DNA of 64,000 nucleotides from Trichosphaerium sp. ATCC 40318 (lineage: Eukaryota > Protista > Tubulinea): the NCBI GenBank assembly GCA_038496445.1, contig JALMLS010000479.1:1-64000 (forward strand). The letters run 5' to 3'. The translations under genes and the position numbers were made by a program. Below the pieces are notes generated by a model, which did no database searches, was not told the origin of the DNA, and saw only the letters and a list, made by a program, of their open reading frames with translations. Every line of letters starts with the position of its first letter. Within the stretch, counting starts at the first letter, position 1. Below, in pieces: positions 8,251 through 55,958 of this stretch.

Positions 8251-8940
8251 CTATGCATTTGGAAGACATGCAGATGTACCCAGGCTGCGAACGCCTTGTA
8301 ATCTATCCACGCCTCTACGCGTTACTCCAGTCTTTGTTAAATCCAATGTGTGGGCGCCTGCAATAGCTTCAAGGGTAACATCTGTAACTTGCGTAGAACG
8401 AAGAAGTAGAGTGTGAGCACCACCCAACTTGGTAACAGATGCATCTGTAATCTGTTTGCAATAGGTAAGATCAATGAATTTTACCCCGACAAGCGCCGAC
8501 ACTGCCTCATCGGTAATTTGCCCGCAATATCCCAAATTGACTACAACTGCGCCAGAGAGCTTCTTTACGACATCATCTGATACTGCTCGCAGTCCTCTTA
8601 GGTTTACGTTTCGTGCACGCTGTATGGCCAAAAGCGCATTGGTACTAAGTAGTGTACAGCCTCGGAGGTCCAAATTGCGTGCAGACGCAAGCAGGTTTAT
8701 AAAGGTTGCATCGCGAATTGACTTGTATACGTGTATCACCGTATTGTTCATCACCCCTCTGTATTTAAAGGCTGTTTCAGCGTCTTTAGCGTCGCGCAAG
8801 AAGACTTCTTTAAACCCAACGCAGTCACGTACAACACTAACAAAGAATTTGCAGCATTGAATGGCTTCCATCAGGGATTTCTGATCGAGAAAAGTGAAAA
8901 TTTCGCCTACCATCTCTATTGGTATTGCCAGAAGGTCCAT
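8251..8940 (-). CDS. F-box / leucine-rich-repeat (AMN1/FBXL-type) protein, intronless
   Basis: F-box LLAIPIEMVGEIFTFLDQKSL..CCKFF; cysteine-containing LRRs (NLGYCGQITDEAVSAL, IDLTYCKQITDASVTKL). Confidence 0.9.
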   Translation of the reverse strand: MDLLAIPIEMVGEIFTFLDQKSLMEAIQCCKFFVSVVRDCVGFKEVFLRDAKDAETAFKYRGVMNNTVIHVYKSIRDATFINLLASARNLDLRGCTLLSTNALLAIQRARNVNLRGLRAVSDDVVKKLSGAVVVNLGYCGQITDEAVSALVGVKFIDLTYCKQITDASVTKLGGAHTLLLRSTQVTDVTLEAIAGAHTLDLTKTGVTRRGVDRLQGVRSLGTSACLPNA

Positions 8941-22533: not shown

Positions 22534-24318
22534 TTAGTGCTGAAAGCACCATTGTTCTTCTAACTTTCCGTTCCTGTTCCACTCTTTGTATACACTATGA
22601 AGCTTTCCATAGGCATAGTAGCATTCTTTTTGTAACTTTCCATTATTGTGACACTACTTGTACTTTTTATTCAAAACACCATTTTCATAACAGCATTTTA
22701 GCTTTATATGCCCTGTATCATACCATTCTTTGTATTTCTTGTCCATCTTCCCGTTTAAACAGAACCCGTGTTTCTTCATCTTACCATTGGCATACCATTC
22801 CTTGTACTCTCCGTCAACAATACCCATGTTACAAAAGTAATGTTTGTGTTTCTGGCCTTTCGGATACCATTCTTTGTACTCACCATTCAACTCACCTTTG
22901 ACATAGAAACAATGTTTTAGTAAGTCCCCACGCCAGTTCCATCGTTTATACTCTTTATCCAACTTATCATCAACATAAGAACATTGAATCATCAATTTAC
23001 CATCCCAATGCCACTTATTGTAATCTCCATGTAACTTGTCATTGACATAAAAGCAAAGAGTACGTATATTCCCATCTTTGATCCACTCCTTATACTGTCC
23101 TTGGCGCTTGCCATTACTGTAAGTACATTCCGTCCAAAATCGGCCTTTGGCATTTACTTCCTTGTATTTTCCATCAAGCTTGCCATCAACATAAAAACAG
23201 TGCTTGTATATTTGACCATTGACATGCCACTCCTTGTACTCTCCTTCCAACTGACCTTTGACGTAAACATAAAGTGCTTCCAATTTACCACTTTTAAACC
23301 ACTTCTTGTACACTCCTTTCAACAGACCTTTATCATAAAAACAGCTAACCTTCAACTGTCCGTTCGAATGCCACTTCAAAAACTCGCCATTTTTTTTACC
23401 ATCTGAGTACATGCAATGTAGACATAAACGTCCGTACCACCACTCTTCATATTCATTATTTAACTTACCATTAACATAAAAGCAATCTTTATACAGCTCT
23501 CCATCTTGATTAAACTCCTTGTACTCATAATTCAAGACTCCCTTTTTGTAAAAACAATTTGTCTTTAAATGGCCATTTCTATGGAAATCTTGATAACTCC
23601 CGTTCAACTTATTGTTCTCATAGAAGCTATGTATTTGTAATCTACTTTTATCATACCACTTCTTGTATTCGCCATGAAGCTGGCCTTTAACGTAAATACA
23701 TTGCAAAAGTAAGTCACCCCCGACATCCCACAGTTGGTGCTCTCCATGTAATTTGCCACCAACATAACCACTTTGTATTTTTAGGTGACCATTTCTGTAC
23801 CACTCTGTATATTTACCGTCCAATTCACCTCTTTCGTATACAAGCAATGCTTCAAAGGCACTCCATTGGTATGCCACTCTTTATAGTCGCCTCTCAACTT
23901 TCCATTGTTATAAAAACACTTTTTCTTCACGTGGCCTGCTTTGAAAAATGTTGTTTGCTCTCCGTGTCGTCTACCGCGCTTCCAAGAACCATTTCCTACA
24001 AAAACGTGGGTTTATAATATCACCTTTTAAAGTTCTTACCTCGTAACCAGACTTTGCTGCTATTACTTTTTGATGACACGTATTTTTTCCATTTTCCATG
24101 TTTTCTCAGTTTAGAATCATACCTTGAGCTAGTTGCTGCGTATTTTGACAATATTGGCCATTTACAATAAGCTGTGTTATCAAAATCAATAATACAAAGA
24201 TGTATCTCAACTGGTAGATGTAAAAGGGAGTCACATTGGCCGTAAGAGGTGTTTTTCTGGAGTTGTTATTACCAATACGTGAACTCATAAACAGAGGTAC
24301 CTCTAGTCTTGATGTCAT
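22534..24318 (-). pseudogene. F-box-like + MORN-variant repeat protein, disrupted copy
   Basis: MTSRLE|(44-nt intron)KNTSYGQCDSLLHLPVEIHLCIIDFDNTAYCKWPILSK...KHGKW, a second intron, then many G-x-YKEW-x-x-NG repeats. Frameshift at ~23838 (ttgTAtacgaa). Premature TAG at 22654-22656, after which the repeats continue in frame to 22534. Confidence 0.85.
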
Positions 24319-28862: not shown

Positions 28863-31049
<2,187 letters not shown>

Positions 31050-34686: not shown

Positions 34687-37600
34687 ATGACCGAAAGCGC
34701 CAAAAAAGTTTCCTTGGTCGACGTAGATAGGTAAAACAACTCAAAATTATGTTATAAATGGTATTTTAAAAAAACCTATTTTACAGATACGAGAAAGCAC
34801 GCCGTTTGCTCACATTAATGTACTATTACAAAGGACAAATGGACCGTATCGAGAAGCGAAAGGGTACAGTCTATTTCAAGACAATTACATCGTTTTTTCT
34901 TTTTCAATCAAAACAAATCATCAAACAAACAACGCCAGCGCATTGCTGATTTAACACCTACACTGACTAGCATATAAAGGTAAACCAAAAACAGCACCAA
35001 AGCCTAAAAAGAGAACAATTGCTAGGGTATCAAACGTTTCAACACAACCAGCTGCAAAGAAGCAAAAGACAATATTTATACCACCTTCAAATGTAATAGT
35101 ACAAGAGAAAAAATCACCAGCGTATAATCTTCCACCAACTTTCCCTGACTTCGAGTGGAAGCAAGAGAACCTTCTATTCAGACAGACATTCCCTAAAGCA
35201 AGGCTTGCATCAGACGAGGTACAAATACAACAAAACCAAGCCTCTAACGCCTCAAAACACTTGACAAATTTACAATCAAAATAACCTTACCAAATGGTTC
35301 TATTTGAAAGTTGACGTCTTCAGTACTTGTCTGAGGTCATCAACTTTTTTTTTTCTTTGGATTTTTTTTTTGATTGTTTGTTTGCTCTTCCTTCTCCTTC
35401 TTCTTTCTCTCTTTTTGTCTGTTGTTTAACTTTTTTCTTTAGCAAGATAAAGTACAACAATTAGCTATGATGGATGCAGTAGAACTTGAACTATTATTGA
35501 TTCTACAGAGCTTTGAAGGAAAATCACAACTTACTATTGATGTAAAAGATTTCTTTAGACAGTTCCGTGGAATACCTGATTACAAGGTTACATTCTCTCG
35601 TATGCATCCAGCTATCAAACAAGCATTAAGTGGATGTAAAACGAAGCTATCTAAAGAATTTTTCCAATTCTTCACACGTGAGGGTATCTCTGTTATCAAG
35701 CCTTATCTAACGCCTGACCTTATTCAACGATACAATGCCATGAAGGTAAACATAAAACTTTTTTTTTTTCTTCAATGTTTTTTTTTCTTGTTTTTTCGTT
35801 GTTGTTTGATTAATCCATGTGTTGATGATAGGGTGATTATATTTATGATTTGATACCAGGAGATGTTATTCATTATGCGTTTTCACCTGCTGAAATGGAT
35901 ATAATCAATAAGTGTATGCCAGTAACAAAGAATAACATTACAATAGTAGCGAGGTATGTTTTGGGTCACACGAATTTGTTTTTTTGGTTTGTTTAGTAAT
36001 GGGTTTTGTAGTAAACTTCCAGGGAGAACAGAACGTGATATTATCAGATTTTTACATCATAGAGATACAGCGCCACCTGAAAAACCGCTTAAACAAAATC
36101 CTTTTATTATAAGGGAGCCAATATGCAACCCAAGTGAGTTACTTTGTATTTAATCTACTTCACATACTTCAAAAGCGGATATCAAGTCTTACCTTTTTCT
36201 CCCTTTCTTTAGTACAAAAGAAACGTAAGTCAACTACAACACATAAAATGCTACAACTCAAGGAGTATGGCTCAAAGGCGTCCAAGATATGGAATGTATG
36301 TTATGGGTCAAATTTTTTTTTGATGCAGGTCATCGTATCAAGTTAATCTTCTATTTAGAATAAGCGGTCTGTGCACTACAATATGTTAAGTAAATTGACA
36401 AAGATGAGAATATCTAATAAACCATCTGATGGTATTGTAGACGTAAAACTCAATCGAACATGGTAACAGCACTCTCTAGATGAAAAATGTTTTCAGTTTC
36501 TTTTTTTTTTTTTTGACATTTTGTATTTAGTACAAAGTTGTTATGTGGTACTGCCAGAAAGGATGCAGAGCGAGATAACATATCACTTCTTTATGATCTA
36601 GAAAAAGGAACTGTAAGAGTTTTAAAGGAGCATATGGATACTGTATCTAGAAGTCTGTTTTCCAATGATGACAAGCACATTGTCACATCATCGTACGTTT
36701 ATCAATGTTTGTTTGACGACATTGATTGACTCTGCTTGTAGATATGATGGTACTATTATAGTACGTCCTGTAGATACTTGTATTCCAGAGACTATAATAC
36801 GTATGGAAAACAATGGAGGGTTAGCTAACAAGATTCTTGATATTCGTTTGCATCCAAGAGAAAACGATCTTATAGCATCCATGACTGAGAAAGAGTACAC
36901 TTTTAACTCTCTTCCGTTATACTTTCGATAAACTAACTGTCTATTACAGAATTCACCTTTGGAAGTTTGGTCAAGAGACTCCTGTGCGAACTGTTGTGCC
37001 TCCTCAAGAAGGGTAAGGAAGAACTGAACAAACACAGAGTGCAAGCGACTTATTTTTACCTTAGGACATTGATTGATCTTGAGTTTGCGGGTGCTGGTGA
37101 CTTTGAACATATATTGGTTTGTGCAGAGATGTATCAAGATACTGGACAGGGTTGTGTTCATCTATATAATGTGAACAAGACTCAAATGCTTTATCATATT
37201 CTTGAGAATACTATGGTTAATGCTATTGGTGTTGATAATGAACATAGATATATGTATGCAACAAAGGATGTTGTAAAGATGTATGATATGAGACAGCTTT
37301 CAAAAAAACCAATCAAAAAGTTCAGGACAGGTCAAACTGATACAAACTCTATTTCTTTCAGCCCTTGTCAGCGGTTTGTTCAAATCAGTGGTACAAACAA
37401 CTGTTGTGTTATTTGCGATGTTAGATTTGGTAGAAGGCCTTTATACTATCTACAACATACACCAGTTCCAGTTACAGCAAATACAGGCATTATAGGTATA
37501 ACAGGAGCTAACTGGTACGTTTCCCAACATTATCCTTGATTATTTATTGCGTATATTTTGAGCGAAACTTTTCCTGAGAATTTCATACATCTTTTCCTTT

Positions 37601-38557
37601 AAGCACGTGATTTCTTTTACTGTTTGTTTTTTTTTCAAAAGATCTTTTGATACATGTTCCTTTTGCTTGCAATTTGTTTTGCATGTGATAAAAAGAGTTG
37701 TACCATGGTAGGACTAACTTTTCTTTTTTTTACTTCAAGGTACACGAGCAGTTTTATTGTTACTGGAGGAGAAGATAAAAATGTGAGGGTTTGGGATTTA
37801 TCACGTGCGAATCCACAAATTGCAAAGTATGAAGGTTCAGCGCATATAAGTGCTTTGGATGTATCGCGTCATGGAGATATGATTGTTGCTGGTGATGAAG
37901 CTACTTCAGTGTTTTTATGGACTTTGGAAGATGGTACTTTAAACAAAAAAGCAATTTTTTTTGTAATGTTGTTTCGTACTGATGTATTTATTATAGATGT
38001 CCGTTATCTTCTTCAAGATAATAATAGTGTGATAGAAGCTGGTGGTGTCATGCAAGTTGAAGAACCTCAAGATATGGAGAATGTGGAGGTTGATATTGAA
38101 GTGCTAAATAGAGCTTTACGAGAACGAAGAGCTCAAATGGCTGACTATCAAGCTGCAGCTATCAATGGTGCTAATAATAACCAAATACCTATTCAACCAG
38201 TAGATGCTCCAGTATTAATTGAACCAATGGACCTTGATATGGTTAACGATGACGAAGACGAAGATAGTGGTCCTGAACTAGAAATGAATTTTAGTGGCAC
38301 GTTTTTTTTGCTTTTGCAATGTTTGTTTTGTTTATTTATTGCTTATGGCCTTAATAGATGGTTCTGGTGATGAAGCACATATGGGTGATATAGTTGTAAA
38401 GGCCGTATCTTCAACAAGTAACGTTGTGGTCGCTAATGTTGTTGATGATGACGATACTGCTATTGTTCCCAATGATGCTGCCAAATCCGACAGTGAGCAT
38501 CGCTTGCTATTTGACTCATCTGATTCTGAAGTATGCATTGTACTGACTGAGTCGTAA
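34687..38557 (+). CDS. WD40-repeat protein with Myb/SANT-like motif and DxR (DCAF-type) boxes, multi-exon
   Basis: KLPGRTERDIIRF (Myb-like); WD repeats LKEHMDTVSRSLFSNDDKHIVTSS, IVTGGEDKNVRVWDL; YDMR and CDVR motifs; acidic tail. The 5' end is uncertain. Confidence 0.8.
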
Positions 38558-44332: not shown

Positions 44333-44344
44333 TATCACGTGATA
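44333..44344. promoter_or_regulatory. Palindromic E-box TATCACGTGATA upstream of an F-box-MORN gene (also at 54488-54499)
   Basis: The same 12-bp palindrome lies ~55 nt before the MKH start codon in both paralogs, while nearby upstream sequence diverges. Confidence 0.45.
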
Positions 44345-44398
44345 ACGTGGTACTTTATCTTTAAAATCGGTTATAACCACTTATCGTTGTTTAGGGAA

Positions 44399-45390
44399 AT
44401 GAAGCATTGTTTTCTTTTTAGCCTCCCAGTGGAGCTTCACCTTTGTATTATCGATATTGACAACGAACTTTATGTTAAATGGCCAATATTGTCAAAACAT
44501 ACGGCAATAACAACGAGATTTGATGGTGAGTTGAATAAACACGGAAAATGGATAAAACACGTGCCACAAAGCAAAATCAAAAAAAAGGACGACAACGAAG
44601 CCATATATTCGCCTGCACGACATTTTACACTCGGTGAGCGTAATCGAGAGCATAGTGAGCGTCAGGAAAAGGATAAAAATTTCGAAAAGTGGTTTAAGAG
44701 CACCAAAAAGGACGATTACGAAGCTAAACAGTTGGCTGTACAACATTGGATACACGGTGAGCGTCATGGTAAGTTCGAAGAGTGGTTTAAAAACGGCAGG
44801 CTAAAAATACGGTGTACTTATCACAATGACAAGTTTGAAGGAAAGTATGAGGAGTGGCACTACGAAGGTACAATGGTAAAAAATTGTTGTTATGTTTTGG
44901 GTGATTTACACGGAAAGTACTTTGAAAGGAGGAAAAAAAATCCAAATTGGGTGACGCACTGTACTTACGTTAAAGGCAAGAAAGAAGGGCAATATAAGGA
45001 GTATTACAAAGAAGAGTTGCTCAAAGAATGTCATTATACTGGTGGTGACTTGAACGGAGAATACAAAGAGTGGCATACCAATTCTAGGCAATTGGCAGTA
45101 CATTGCTTTTATGTCAATGGTCTTTTAAATAAAGAGTATGAAGAGTGGAGTCGTTCTGGCCAGATAGTCAAGCGCCATGTTTACGTCAATGGAAAGTAAA
45201 CGGAACAAGGTGAATTAAAAGTATATTGCGGTTGATATTTTGTGTGGAGAGTACAAAGAGTGGCATCGCACCAGTGAATGTAGCAAACATTGGTTGTGTT
45301 AATGATAAGTTACACGGAAAATACAAGAAATGGACCAATTTGGAGGTTTGCATATACATGACGTTTATGATAACGGTACTCTAATATCTG
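44399..45390 (+). pseudogene. F-box-like + MORN-variant repeat protein, truncated paralog of 54507
   Basis: N-terminus nearly identical to the 54507 gene (MKHCFLFSLPVELHLCIIDIDNELYVKWPILSK). Degenerate internal duplication at ~44580-44790. AAA>TAA at 45197-45199, then deleted and frameshifted repeats to ~45390. Confidence 0.85.
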
Positions 45391-49576: not shown

Positions 49577-51180
49577 TGATTTTACAAACATCAGCCTTTG
49601 AAAAAACACAAATTAACATTGGCTGTAACTTTCCTAAGTAAAAAGAATGAAAGTTTACAAACAATAAGTTTATTGTATAAAGTTTTATATTATAATTATG
49701 TTGTCATAGTTGAAATTGCAGTAGTTGGCATTCACGTTCTACTTGATGTTGAAGCTACAAAGTTAATAACATGTTAAGCCATGAAAATGTAATACTATCA
49801 AAGTATAAATCTATGTTGCTGCAAAATACAAAGTGTTTGACTTGCCTGATTTCCAAATAGCTGGCAGTACCTATTAGTAAGCCTGTATTGCTAGTTTACA
49901 AGTCAAACTGAATTAATTGGTAGCAGTACATGCCTGGTCAAGCGTGGCAGGTAAAAGAGCCTCATGACTTGATTCATCATTGCTTCTATATTAACTACTG
50001 GACGTGATTGTCTTTGTAACATGGTACAACTCAAGTACAAAGTGTTTATGAATTTCCCACGCCCAGCCAAAACGCTCTACTGGCATCTGTATGACCCCAG
50101 TATTGAAAGTAACCTTACAAGGTACCCTGCTACACATGTCACTGAAGCGCCTTCAAACCGCTTTCTTTTCTAAACTCCGTTGCAGATCTGGCCCATACTG
50201 CTCACATTAAAATGCTCATATAGCACGCGTCAGATCACTGGAATATGAATATTATTCTGGACTGGCTGATACTACGTGCCAACACACCAGCTACAAGTAC
50301 GAGCCAAAAACTTTGCACTAGCCCTGTTCCCAGATGCCACTAAAGTAGGTTCCTTGTACTGATGCGCATGGTATGGCTGGAGTACAACAACATATGTCAT
50401 TGAGGCTGAAGCCTTATTTCCCAGTACAAACATGAGAGCCTTACGATCAAATTTACCAAAAACTGTATTCGAACTTTGTTGGCTTTTATAGCCTAACCAC
50501 ACGATTAACGCTAGCAGTGCAACTCCAGTATGCCCTTGATGGGCAAGGAGTGCAAATAATAAAAGTAAAGTGTTGCTTCTATATTTCACGTTCCTCATCG
50601 AAGCCTTATTTACAAAAATAAATAAAGACTACAAAAGGATTATACAGTGGAGGTGGTTGATTGTACAGCGCTGGAGGGTTCGGTGGCTACATTTGGCATT
50701 GGTGCGCTACTTTTACAGCACCGTCAACGGTGTACTAAATAACCAAGACCCATGATAGGACGCCTAGTCATGAGTTCCAACCAGGACTAAGTTTATTGAC
50801 ATCCGGCAAACCAGCCGGAATTGGTGCAATGGATGGCCGGTCGAGAATAATAGCCAGCAAAAGAGCCGGAAAAACAACATCTCAGTGATAGGAAAAAAAA
50901 ATTATCGAAACAAAAGTTTATCGCTAATCTGAGTCAATTCCAGCAACTACTTGGTCTGTAGTCGTTGATCAACGTAAGACACAACTAGACGGACTGAAAG
51001 TGCTTCGGAACGGTAGGTACAATGTTTTTATTGTTTGAAAACAAAGATACAAAGTTTCGTTGAAACATGATAGTGCAATCCTATAAATAGCAGCAAGTCA
51101 TTAAGTTATAAATCCAAGTACCAAAAAGTGTCTGTTTGCACATCCTTCGCATCAACAACTGTTCACGCATAAGACTACGT

Positions 51181-52237
51181 ATGGAAGCCATTAAAACAAG
51201 TTTTTCGTCTCTATCTTTGAAAACAACGCTACTAGACGTTACAGACGATGGTATACTATCAATCCTATCGTATTTAACATTCGAAGAGCTTGGAAGCGTT
51301 CAAATAGTTTCAATACGCTTCAATGCACTTGTAAGAGTCGAAAAACAGCGGTACCCGTCACTACCAAACGAATTAAGCATACAGAGGGAAGGTAGCATTG
51401 GTGACCAAAACCTTCGCATTAAAATGTCCTACGACAGAACAACAACTTACACACTTCACATAAGCCGTCTATCCATCGAACATGAAGAAAGCTATTATAA
51501 TTACTTTGGAACGTTTAAAAAAAACCCACGTGATATCGTTTTATCTCGTGACAAATGCGATGAAGAAAAAGAAGGTGTTTGTACATTCGTTGTTCCTGTT
51601 ACAATCTTTCAAGGCTATGTAATGTTTACTCTCAAAGTCTACATTGTTTGCGAAAAGAATGGAAAGAAGCTATTAACCAAAACATGTCAAATAGAATTGC
51701 TATATGAAGGGTTTTACCCAGGCTGTTTCGATGGAAATGCAAGAATAAAAATGTCAAAAGACGGTGAAATGAAGAGAGCTAAAGATATTTGTGTTGGTGA
51801 CAAAGTGCTGTCTTCATCAGGAACCATGCAAACTGTTATTCATGTTGAAGCTATTCGGACAAAAGTGAAGAAACGTATGGTTAAGCTTGGTAGTTTTTGG
51901 ATAACGAGAGGACATCCTGTACTCATCAAAGGAAACTGGTATGTTCTTAAGCAAAGATCACTTTAAACAACAATTACTAAACAAAACAAATAGGTACAGG
52001 CCTGATGAATTGAAGGACGCTGTTGTTCGAGTATCTGATGGTTTGTATAACTTTGTTTTGGATGGTGAACACACAATACTTGTTGGCGAAGGAGAATCAT
52101 ACACGTGTTGTACTTTAGGCAAGTATTGTGGTGAAAGGCTTGAACGTTTGCATCCTAAACAAAACGAGCGGTATGGCGTCAACATTCTCAAAGTAAATTA
52201 CGAGCATGAAAAGCGTAGTGGAAGGATTGAAAACTAA
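51181..52237 (+). CDS. F-box-like + beta-rich domain + Hint (Vint-type) autoprocessing domain; 2 exons (intron 51939-51993), ~333 aa
   Basis: F-box LLDVTDDGILSILSYLTFEELGSVQIVSIRFNALV; Hint block A G|CFDGNARIKM..KRAKDICVGDKVL (Cys codon 51724); block B ITRGHP; block F LYNFVLDGEHTILVG; Vint-type ending CCTLG. A 55-nt GT-AG intron restores the frame (W|YRP). Confidence 0.88.
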
Positions 52238-53149
52238 TAAACGTTCAGTACACTTTCAAAACATGTTTTTTTTCTCGTGCAAACTGCATATTGGTCAAGG
52301 AGACTGTGCTGGAAACCTGAAGAATATGTACAAAACTTACATAGAAATAACACAGTTACAACTGTAACTACTAAAATACCATGAGCGCCTATCGGCACGA
52401 ACAGTGTAGAATATGTTAGAAGTACTTCCGCATGTAACATTTTATCAAAAACAACGCAACTACCTTAATCATCAGTTGTAGAACCCGAAGATAGCAGTTG
52501 AGGGCCCTTAGGAAGCAAAGCTCCTAGAGGCCAAGTCCAATGGCAGCCAAAGCTTGATCTTCTACATCAAAGCCTTGAACCAATATTCGATGGCAGCCCA
52601 CCTCAATGAGAACGGATACATAGGATACACTGTGCACTAGACCTTGTAACCCAACTCTTACATCAAGTCACGATGTGTTGGAAGATAAAATTGCCTTCTT
52701 GTGTGTACTCTATTATATCACTCATTGTACAGCCGTTGTTTTTTTTATGAAAGAAACCTCGATCTCTTTCACACTATATGGATAATCCAACAATACTTTT
52801 ATGCACAACATATTATCCAAAAAAAAAATTGTGGGATAGAGTTCATTGAAATATCCAATCAAACTACTCAAATATGGATAATGCACATTTTAAAATGCTC
52901 ATAAAGCCTTCGTGACCTGTTAACGCGTGTGAGAACTGTTTCGGCGATGTTTTGTTTCGCCAAACGTGCAACTAAACGATTATTCCTTTTTTACGCTTTA
53001 ATGTGCACTAAAAAGTTGATCGTAGTGTAGTACGGCTATTATGGTGTGTAATTACTCGTTTCAACACTTTTTCACGTTGTAGTGTAATACGAATAATCAC
53101 CGTATAGATGAAAAAACTCGCTTCTTGGATTAAACATCGACATACAACT

Positions 53150-54506: not shown

Positions 54507-55958
54507 ATGTATCTTAAAAATGGATATAACCAACACTTATCGTTGTTTAGGGAAATGAAGCATTGTTTTCTTTTTAACCTCCCAGTGGAGCTTCACCTTT
54601 GTATTATCGATATTGACAACGAACTTTATGTTAAATGGCCAATACTGTCAAAACATACGGCAATAACAACGAGATTTGATGGTGAGTTGAATAAACACGG
54701 AAAATGGATAAAACACGTGCCACAAAGCAAAATCAAAAAAAAGAACGACTACGAAGACAAATACTTGGCTGTACAACATTGGAAGCATGGTAAGCGTCAT
54801 GGAAAGTTAGCAGAGTGGTTTGAGAACGGCAGGCTAAAAATACGGTGTTCTTATAACAAAGACGTACTCAAGGGAAAATACAAGGAGTGGAACAACGAAG
54901 GTACAATAGTGAAGAGTTGCTACTATGTCTTGGGTGCTTTACACGGAAAGTACCTTGAAAGGAGGAAAATAACTACAAGCTGGGTGACGCACTGTAAATA
55001 CGTTAACGGCAAAAAAGATGGAAAGTACAAGGAGCATTACTTCGGGGAATTATTTAAAAAATGTTATTATACTGATGGTGACTTGAACGGAGAATACAAA
55101 GAGTGGCATACCAATTCTAGGCAATTGGCAGTACATTGCTTTTATGTCAATGGTCTTTTAAATAAGGAGTATAAAGAGTGGAGTCGTTCTGGCCAGATAC
55201 TTAAGCACCATGTTTATGTCAATGGAAAGAAAAATGGAGAGTACAAGGAGTGGCATGACGGTGAATTAAAAGTACATTGCTTTTACGTTGATGATGTTTT
55301 GGATGGAGAGTATAAGAAGTGGTATAATTCTAGTATATCGCAAGATCGCGTACTACAATTTCATTGTGTTTATGCTAATGGTTGTTTGCATGGAGATTAC
55401 AAAAAGTTCAATCGCTCTGGCCAAATACTTAAACACCGTAGTTATGCCAACGGTAAGCTAAATGGAGAGTACAAGGATTGGCTTCGTAATGGTGACTTAA
55501 AACTACATTGCTTTTACGTTGATGATGTTTTGAATGGAGAATATAAGGAGTGGTATTATTCTAAAAAATCGCCATATTTTGTACACCAATTACATTGTGT
55601 TTATGCTAATGGTTGTTTGCATGGAGATTACATAGAGTTCAATAGGTCTGGCCAAAAACTTAAGCGCTGTAGTTATGTCAACGGTAAGCTGGATGGGGAA
55701 CGCAATGAGTGGTTTTGTAATGGTGACTTAAAACTAAGTTGCTCTTTTACCGATGGCACTTTGAATGGAGAGTGCATAGACTGGTATCGTTACCGTACCG
55801 ATATAGTTCGCAGATATTGCACTTATGCCAATGGAAAGAAACATGGAGAATTCAAGGCATGGACTGAGACAGGTGTTTTGTATGTACATGATTTTTATAT
55901 TAATGGTACCCGAATAGCAAATCTTCTGAAGTTGGCAAGAAAAAAAAACAAAAGATAG
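54507..55958 (+). CDS. F-box-like + MORN-variant repeat protein, intact copy (483 aa ORF; alternative start 54555)
   Basis: LFNLPVELHLCIIDID F-box-like start, followed by a long array of NG-x-L-x-G-E-Y-K-E-W repeats. Confidence 0.88.
   Translation: MYLKNGYNQHLSLFREMKHCFLFNLPVELHLCIIDIDNELYVKWPILSKHTAITTRFDGELNKHGKWIKHVPQSKIKKKNDYEDKYLAVQHWKHGKRHGKLAEWFENGRLKIRCSYNKDVLKGKYKEWNNEGTIVKSCYYVLGALHGKYLERRKITTSWVTHCKYVNGKKDGKYKEHYFGELFKKCYYTDGDLNGEYKEWHTNSRQLAVHCFYVNGLLNKEYKEWSRSGQILKHHVYVNGKKNGEYKEWHDGELKVHCFYVDDVLDGEYKKWYNSSISQDRVLQFHCVYANGCLHGDYKKFNRSGQILKHRSYANGKLNGEYKDWLRNGDLKLHCFYVDDVLNGEYKEWYYSKKSPYFVHQLHCVYANGCLHGDYIEFNRSGQKLKRCSYVNGKLDGERNEWFCNGDLKLSCSFTDGTLNGECIDWYRYRTDIVRRYCTYANGKKHGEFKAWTETGVLYVHDFYINGTRIANLLKLARKKNKR

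Follow-up and report, generated by a model that had tools for sequence, protein, structure and literature searches.

A Trichosphaerium gene for a likely F-box, a predicted beta-sandwich and a Vint domain: a candidate self-cleaving SCF adaptor

The window analysed here is the whole 64,000-nt stretch of Trichosphaerium sp. ATCC 40318 DNA. Judged from its sequence, the locus at 51181-52237 is a real two-exon gene, predicted to encode a 333-aa protein in which a likely F-box, a beta-sandwich and a Vint domain follow one another. The features of the locus are listed below.

51082-51089, + strand: TATAAATA, a TATA-box-like element found by direct reading, ~99 nt 5′ of the start codon
51181-51938, + strand: exon 1 (codons 1-252 plus 2 nt of Trp253), starting at the first in-frame ATG of the ORF
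51229-51351, + strand: likely F-box, residues ~17-57 (LLDVTDDGILSILSYLTFEELGSVQIVSIRFNALV...), placed by sub-cutoff Pfam matches in register, AF2 helices, VIA and the family profile
51358-51705, + strand: predicted Ig/FN3-like beta-sandwich, residues ~60-175, placed by seven AF2 strands and VIA matches
51721-51726, + strand: Gly181|Cys182, the predicted scissile bond and Hint Cys1, from the translation, with the Cys conserved in family alignments
51724-51938, + strand: N-terminal half of Vint, with motif A, and with motif B T242-R-G-H245 at 51904-51915, from the PF14623 match
51939-51993, + strand: intron of 55 nt, GTATGT...AATAG, placed by frame restoration and by homologues that bridge it as W|YRPDEL
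51994-52237, + strand: exon 2, from a second ORF in another frame, with the TAA stop at 52235-52237
51994-52120, + strand: C-terminal half of Vint as far as the CCTLG strand (52106-52120), from Vint profile positions 73-124 and the 8r2c alignment
52121-52237, + strand: C-terminal tail of Vint (KYCGERLERLHPKQNERYG...) with the TAA stop, from family conservation and the 8r2c alignment
52236-52241, + strand: AATAAA, a possible polyadenylation signal found by direct reading, overlapping the stop codon

Read without splicing, the exon 1 ORF opens with the ATG at 51181 and meets its stop at 51966. Excision of the GT..AG intron at 51939-51993 leaves an open CDS of 1002 nt, encoding 333 aa, in which the Trp253 codon is split by the splice junction and the joined protein reads ..LIKGNW-YRPDELKD.. 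All full-length relatives, including those derived from transcripts, have an uninterrupted ..G.W[YFW]RPDE.. at the position of the junction. When relatives were compared with the window by tblastn, they matched in two segments in different frames, the first ending at 51939-51942 and the second restarting at 51989-51998. The intron is supported because these segments switch frame there and transcripts cross the junction. The two exons proposed in the initial annotation are thus supported: the frame is restored, the splice sites are canonical and homologues bridge the junction. Direct reading found no ATG between the TATAAATA element and 51181.

The RNA evidence consists of a single identical contig of 151 nt (51673-51823), from one run of uncertain RNA status, and contains no joint across the intron. 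Since this lone contig lies within exon 1, expression is weakly indicated and the splice rests on homology. Such coverage would be expected of a silent or decaying, unexpressed paralogue, or of a wrong gene model, and the protein is also missing from an index of 5.8 billion proteins, a word-indexed search of which gave no match with exon 1 as query. We nevertheless regard this explanation as highly improbable: both exons are intact and in frame between canonical splice sites, every residue invariant in the family is present, the TATA-like and AATAAA elements are properly placed, and no transposon-like repeats were found in the flanks. Neither a second copy of the gene nor an Rfam family was found within the 64-kb window.

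Several other ORFs in the window gave domain matches. The one at 8251-8940 (- strand, 229 aa) is an ordinary F-box-LRR gene; its F-box scores 21.1 bits, which exceeds the cutoff, and LRR_6 repeats come after it. MORN_2 repeat variants are unusually dense: three ORFs scattered about the F-box-Vint gene are rich in them, at 22654-23877 (- strand, E 6e-22), 44339-45199 (+ strand, E 2.7e-4, below the Pfam cutoff) and 54507-55958 (+ strand, E 3.6e-9). Adjacent ORFs at 36967-37539 and 37654-38370 (+ strand) gave WD40 and weak CDC20-Fizzy-like beta-propeller matches and are probably exons of one gene; no relatives of the second were found in the word-indexed protein search. A partial protein-kinase domain is encoded at 30003-30641 (+ strand; Pkinase, E 2.5e-11).

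In order to identify the Hint-type domain, the two exons were searched separately with Pfam models. With exon 1 alone, the Vint model PF14623 scored 31.2 bits against a cutoff of 27 (E 2.2e-7), residues 181-251 corresponding to profile positions 1-68; with the piece 51724-51938 by itself it scored 33.7 bits (E 4e-8). In exon 2 the same profile continues at positions 73-124 (E 0.036). The HMM search therefore bears out the Vint/Hint identity that had been proposed from motifs. Models for Hedgehog Hint, Hom_end_hint, PT-HINT and Hint_2 gave weaker matches from the same start, all below cutoff; Pfam Hint/Hog (PF01079), at 21.3 bits versus a cutoff of 29.7, matched the first 40 residues only. The motifs are GCFDG (residues 181-185, split as G181|C182-FDG), ITRGHP (241-246), WYRPDE (253-258), LYNFVL (270-275), HTILVG (279-284) and CCTLG (291-295); all but WYRPDE had been placed at these same residues in the initial annotation. 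As it had also stated, Cys1 and TxxH are intact (C182 and T242-R-G-H245) and the intein His-Asn end is absent; there is no C-extein either.

Two AF2 models were used to examine the fold, one of exon 1 of the window protein, which contains the first half of Vint, and one of the full-length homologue P0009, whose identity with exon 2 of the window protein is 60%. In P0009 the Vint domain (pLDDT 79-95) is followed by two helices, the tail being helical at residues 302-323. The top PDB match of this model is 8r2c, the solved Vint domain of Tetrahymena (E 9.2e-8, TM 0.63, rmsd 2.6 Å, 28% identity), followed by mini-inteins, Tetrahymena BIL2 and the Hedgehog 17-kDa fragment 1at0, and searches of AlphaFold DB and ESM Atlas likewise returned Vint/Hint proteins. 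The Hint fold claimed for the window protein is thus predicted in its homologue, closest to the Vint structure. In the exon 1 model, residues 176-180, just before Gly181|Cys182, have pLDDT <50, and this linker is predicted to be flexible, as at Hint junctions.

The sequence comparison with 8r2c was extended to the C-terminus. The family profile matched this structure at E 5.7e-15, and exon 2 alone matched its residues 81-133 at E 8.8e-4, with CCTLG aligned to CICLG and ERLERLHP to QERVA-YHP. Because the ~40-aa tail aligns with 8r2c, it is the conserved C-terminal part of Vint and not a special appendage. The initial annotation had placed the tail where the sterol-recognition region of Hedgehog lies; the position does match, but by this alignment the tail is an ordinary Vint C-terminus, and no similarity to the sterol-recognition region was found in it. 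The paper behind 8r2c reportedly proposes ligand-regulated cleavage and an ‘adduct recognition region’. No signal peptide, N-terminal hydrophobic segment or convincing transmembrane segment was found in the 333-aa protein, which is probably cytosolic judging from its sequence.

Conservation was examined in an alignment of 14 sequences with a mean identity of ~25%. Fully invariant are C182, G206-D207, T242, G244, H245 and P246, and nearly so are W, P and E of WYRPDE, N of LYNF and a C-terminal G, C, R and P. The pattern C..LG.YC..R....P in the C-terminal tail is kept across the family. The residue preceding Cys1 varies among relatives (G, C, F, Y, K or S), and the environmental P0010 relative L002 (130-1164, + strand) carries Tyr instead of Cys1 (..FKGYFDG..), so that it is naturally inactive unless the Tyr reflects an error in sequencing. 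To our knowledge, autoprocessing has been demonstrated for hardly any Vint protein and for no member of this family. These last points would fit a Vint domain that does not cleave, its Hint fold acting as a binding or regulatory module, for substrate recognition or ligand sensing, in a full-length SCF adaptor. This seems unlikely, since the invariance of Cys1 and of the motif B Thr and His across such diverged sequences is hard to explain without catalysis, and the linker before Cys1 has the flexibility predicted at Hint junctions.

The N-terminus likely has an F-box fold, as judged from models and profiles. The matches to Pfam F-box-like (PF12937; 18.0 bits against a cutoff of 24.3, E 0.0024) and F-box (PF00646; 15.4 bits against 20.5, E 0.018) are below cutoff but in register, over residues 18-52. 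The Leu-Pro motif that starts helix 1 of the F-box is Val20-Thr21 in the window protein and L/M-P in several relatives; the Pfam F-box cutoff is passed in P0002, P0009 and P0035. In the exon 1 model three helices are predicted at residues 22-29, 34-40 and 45-57 (pLDDT 83-88), and an exhaustive structural scan with VIA matched model residues 12-58 to 47/48 residues of the Fbw7 F-box chain 5ibk_E (Z 6.8). A profile made from ten family N-termini, that of the window protein included, matched almost only solved F-box proteins: Cdc4 (1.4e-5), FBXL5 (7e-5) and KDM2A (1.4e-4), then KDM2B, TIR1, FBXO3, FBXO44, Skp2, FBXL2, FBXO4 and FBXW8. The segment ILSYLTFEEL...VS..FN.L of the window protein aligns with IFNYLQFEDI...VS..WN.I of Cdc4 with no gap. 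Language-model neighbours of the N-terminus were F-box clusters, with low scores.

Other searches with the N-terminus were less informative. By phmmer, the N-terminus alone matched no solved F-box in the PDB, only LRR noise. Its hhalign comparison with the family N-termini was weak (probability 8.6%), and Foldseek with the whole exon 1 model returned from the PDB only composites of helices and Ig domains (Brr2, KirBac). The F-box of the initial annotation thus stands in that register, fold and family profile agree, but its scores are sub-cutoff and it is weaker than had been implied. Helices that resemble an F-box in shape and do not bind Skp1 would make the protein a precursor of another kind, in which Vint releases a helical and Ig-like fragment with an unrelated role. 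The sub-cutoff Pfam scores, the change of Leu-Pro to Val-Thr, the LRR noise and the low hhalign probability are all compatible with this; we consider it doubtful given the near-exclusive matching of the family profile to solved F-box proteins, the ungapped alignment with the Cdc4 F-box segment and the span of the Fbw7 match.

Between the likely F-box and Vint, the exon 1 model has seven strands (residues 64-173, pLDDT ~66-78). VIA paired them, at Z 7-8.2, with a large number of Ig-like and FN3 domains, of which no single one was specific. The ~120-aa beta-rich domain noticed initially is therefore, in the model, a generic Ig/FN3-like sandwich of seven strands. No sequence relatives of the sandwich were found beyond the family, the phmmer matches all running through the Hint region. 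In the Arcella-type subfamily the sandwich has an FN3-like signature, Y.F.V.A.N..G, and FN3+Hint two-domain proteins were among the AlphaFold DB matches. We presume that the sandwich is a candidate substrate-binding domain. FBXO3 (ApaG) and FBXO2/44 (FBA) likewise consist of an F-box followed by a single beta-sandwich domain, and ApaG-type sandwiches are weak structural matches of the window sandwich (1xvs and 6zlx, Z 6.7-6.9). In contrast to the window protein, they have no self-cleaving C-terminal domain, and the window sandwich has no specific family assignment.

We also determined how widely this architecture occurs. When 1.84 billion representatives were searched with phmmer, 34 proteins matched at E ≤ 1e-3, in every case through residues ~149-252; the complete spliced Vint of 152 aa, used as query, aligns with these relatives from position 1 to ~137. 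The family alignment found five proteins in the word-indexed protein search and three loci among metagenome contigs. The same layout in 318-361 aa, with an F-box match, occurs in P0002, P0004, P0009, P0033 and P0040. P0010, P0017 and P0027 have this layout with no F-box match at E 0.1; the first two look truncated at the N-terminus, and P0027 comes from Arcella intermedia transcripts (EukProt). P0041, also from EukProt, has the same layout and was left out of the F-box scan. P0026, Pelomyxa schiedti KAH3723301.1, has the same Vint type, and Pfam finds only Vint in it. The remaining relatives are short JGI or Logan contigs. A unique architecture, as might have been supposed at first, is refuted by the relatives of the same layout in Arcella and in environmental transcripts and by the Vint of the same type in Pelomyxa. 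Among the large clusters of ESM Atlas, none has an F-box together with Vint.

On one metagenome contig of 1.07 kb (L003), a clear F-box ORF at 15-347 (LPYEIFPYILKYLDLEDI..) and an FN3-like + Vint ORF at 76-1041 lie in different frames of the + strand; the split could stem from a frameshift, from an intron left unspliced or from faulty assembly.

In a tree of 25 Vint domains, the window protein falls within a clade of 19 members (support 96/88), separate from the classic U-box-VWA-Vwaint-Vint proteins and with the signature TRGHP / W[YFW]RPDE / C[CSA][ST]LG[KG]YC. By these sequence criteria the family is a distinct Vint clade from amoebozoan-type protists, a cassette found mostly behind an F-box and a beta-sandwich. 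Other N-termini also occur within the clade: a SAM-methyltransferase precedes Vint in P0034 (688 aa), a LIM zinc finger is added to F-box, sandwich and Vint in P0035 (376 aa, from the cluster of P0009), and helical N-termini are found with an F-box in P0002 and without one in P0021 and P0042. With such varied N-termini on one clade, Vint behaves as a portable C-terminal processing cassette.

A literature search for an F-box with a Vint or Hint domain found no description of such a fusion, as the initial annotation had supposed, and the F-box-Vint family is apparently undescribed. Vint was defined as the Hint type that stands behind VWA and Vwaint, in proteins that were judged intracellular and four of which contain a U-box (Burglin 2008, PMC2362128). 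The features that these VWA-Vwaint-Vint proteins share with the window protein are Cys1 of motif A, T..H of motif B, the segment W..P.E, a Cys-containing strand C.CLG at the end, a conserved C-terminal extension, the absence of a C-extein and a probable intracellular location. Some classic members, such as P0028, carry a U-box, so that a link between Vint and E3 ligases was already known. Pfam found neither VWA nor Vwaint in the window protein, both being clear in P0028; the Hint domain thus lies outside the classic VWA context, as had been claimed. The window Vint is also shorter than the classic one, covering profile positions 1-124 of 166, and belongs to a well-supported clade of its own.

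Hint domains mature secreted signals (Hedgehog), splice proteins (inteins) and release bacterial toxins. With inteins the window protein shares the Hint fold, Cys1 and TxxH. It lacks the C-terminal His-Asn, a C-extein nucleophile and a homing endonuclease, and splicing is therefore impossible; the fold ends in CCTLG and the stop follows 38 residues later. Like Hedgehog Hog, it has a G|CF junction, a Hint fold and, beyond this fold, an extension at the position of the sterol-recognition region, and from Cys1 and TxxH an N-to-S acyl shift would be expected here too. Unlike Hedgehog, it has a sub-cutoff match to the Hog model, no signal peptide and no sterol-recognition similarity.

In Hedgehog a thioester of the same kind is resolved by cholesterol. 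By analogy, a lipid or sterol could attack the Gly181 thioester of the window protein, as could a metabolite or the Lys of a target protein, leaving the F-box-sandwich fragment covalently anchored to a membrane or a substrate, where it would recruit an SCF. The GCF at the junction, which in the alignment is the cleavage tripeptide of Hedgehog, and the conserved tail at the place of the sterol-recognition region are in keeping with this idea. A second precedent comes from Tetrahymena, where the Hint thioester of BUBL/BIL2 is resolved by Lys to give an isopeptide bond with no ATP, and BIL2 conjugates a ubiquitin-like domain to other proteins (PMC8616854). BUBL/BIL2 (PDB 6y75, 6tmm) is a protist Hint wired into the ubiquitin system and is structurally related to the Vint model. 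BIL2, however, is a BIL-type Hint that lies between ubiquitin-like domains and splices or conjugates, whereas the window Hint is terminal and follows an F-box. BIL2/BUBL is thus a precedent for tagging, but nothing in the window protein points to it specifically. We consider covalent tagging quite unlikely here: the tail is unlike the Hedgehog region and is an ordinary Vint C-terminus, Pfam Hint/Hog stays below its cutoff (21.3 versus 29.7 bits), and the same Vint clade stands behind unrelated N-termini such as the methyltransferase, which argues for a generic release function over tagging.

The reading towards which we lean is a self-cleaving SCF adaptor composed of an F-box (residues ~17-57), a sandwich (~60-175), a linker to Gly181, Vint (Cys182 to ~Gly295) and a helical tail (296-333). 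Real processing is favoured by the catalytic residues, which are strictly conserved, by the flexible linker in front of Cys1 and by the cassette-like distribution. Cys182, helped by Thr242 and His245, would turn the Gly181-Cys182 peptide bond into a thioester by an N-to-S acyl shift, and water or a small molecule positioned by the C-terminal tail would resolve it. The products would be an F-box-sandwich fragment of 20.8 kDa, which would serve an SCF ubiquitin ligase as substrate receptor, and a Vint fragment of 17.3 kDa. Vint would then be a self-removing pro-domain or a switch on an SCF adaptor. From sequence and models we infer the cleavage, the binding of Skp1, the nucleophile and the biological role alike.

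An F-box adaptor with its own self-cleaving domain would add a post-translational, possibly ligand- or redox-gated, step of maturation to SCF receptors. After the U-box-VWA-Vint proteins, it would be another case, independent of the first, in which Vint is coupled to E3 ligases, and this pair of cases would hint at a role of Vint in the ubiquitin system. With few members, which are compact (~330 aa) and easy to express, the family makes Vint cleavage and the resolution of the thioester directly testable. A bolder and very unlikely variant is that Vint is a self-installing ligase, independent of E1 and E2, that uses its Gly181 thioester to move the F-box-sandwich fragment to a Lys of a target protein, to a metabolite or to a lipid. 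If so, the resulting module, covalently anchored and recruiting Skp1, would amount either to an SCF tethered to a membrane or to a covalent degron tag, and paralogues with other sandwich domains would have other specificities.

An origin of the family in giant viruses was also considered and is disfavoured: no family relative was found among viral contigs, although Vint-only clusters occur in Nucleocytoviricota (ESM Atlas). Two of the proteins retrieved are of a different build. P0008 (4119 aa) has at least five tandem Hint domains, with a TEEH motif B that repeats about every 147 residues, and P0014 (1757 aa) also has at least five, with Hom_end_hint and AXH repeats. Both resemble the phage AXH/Hint clusters of ESM Atlas.
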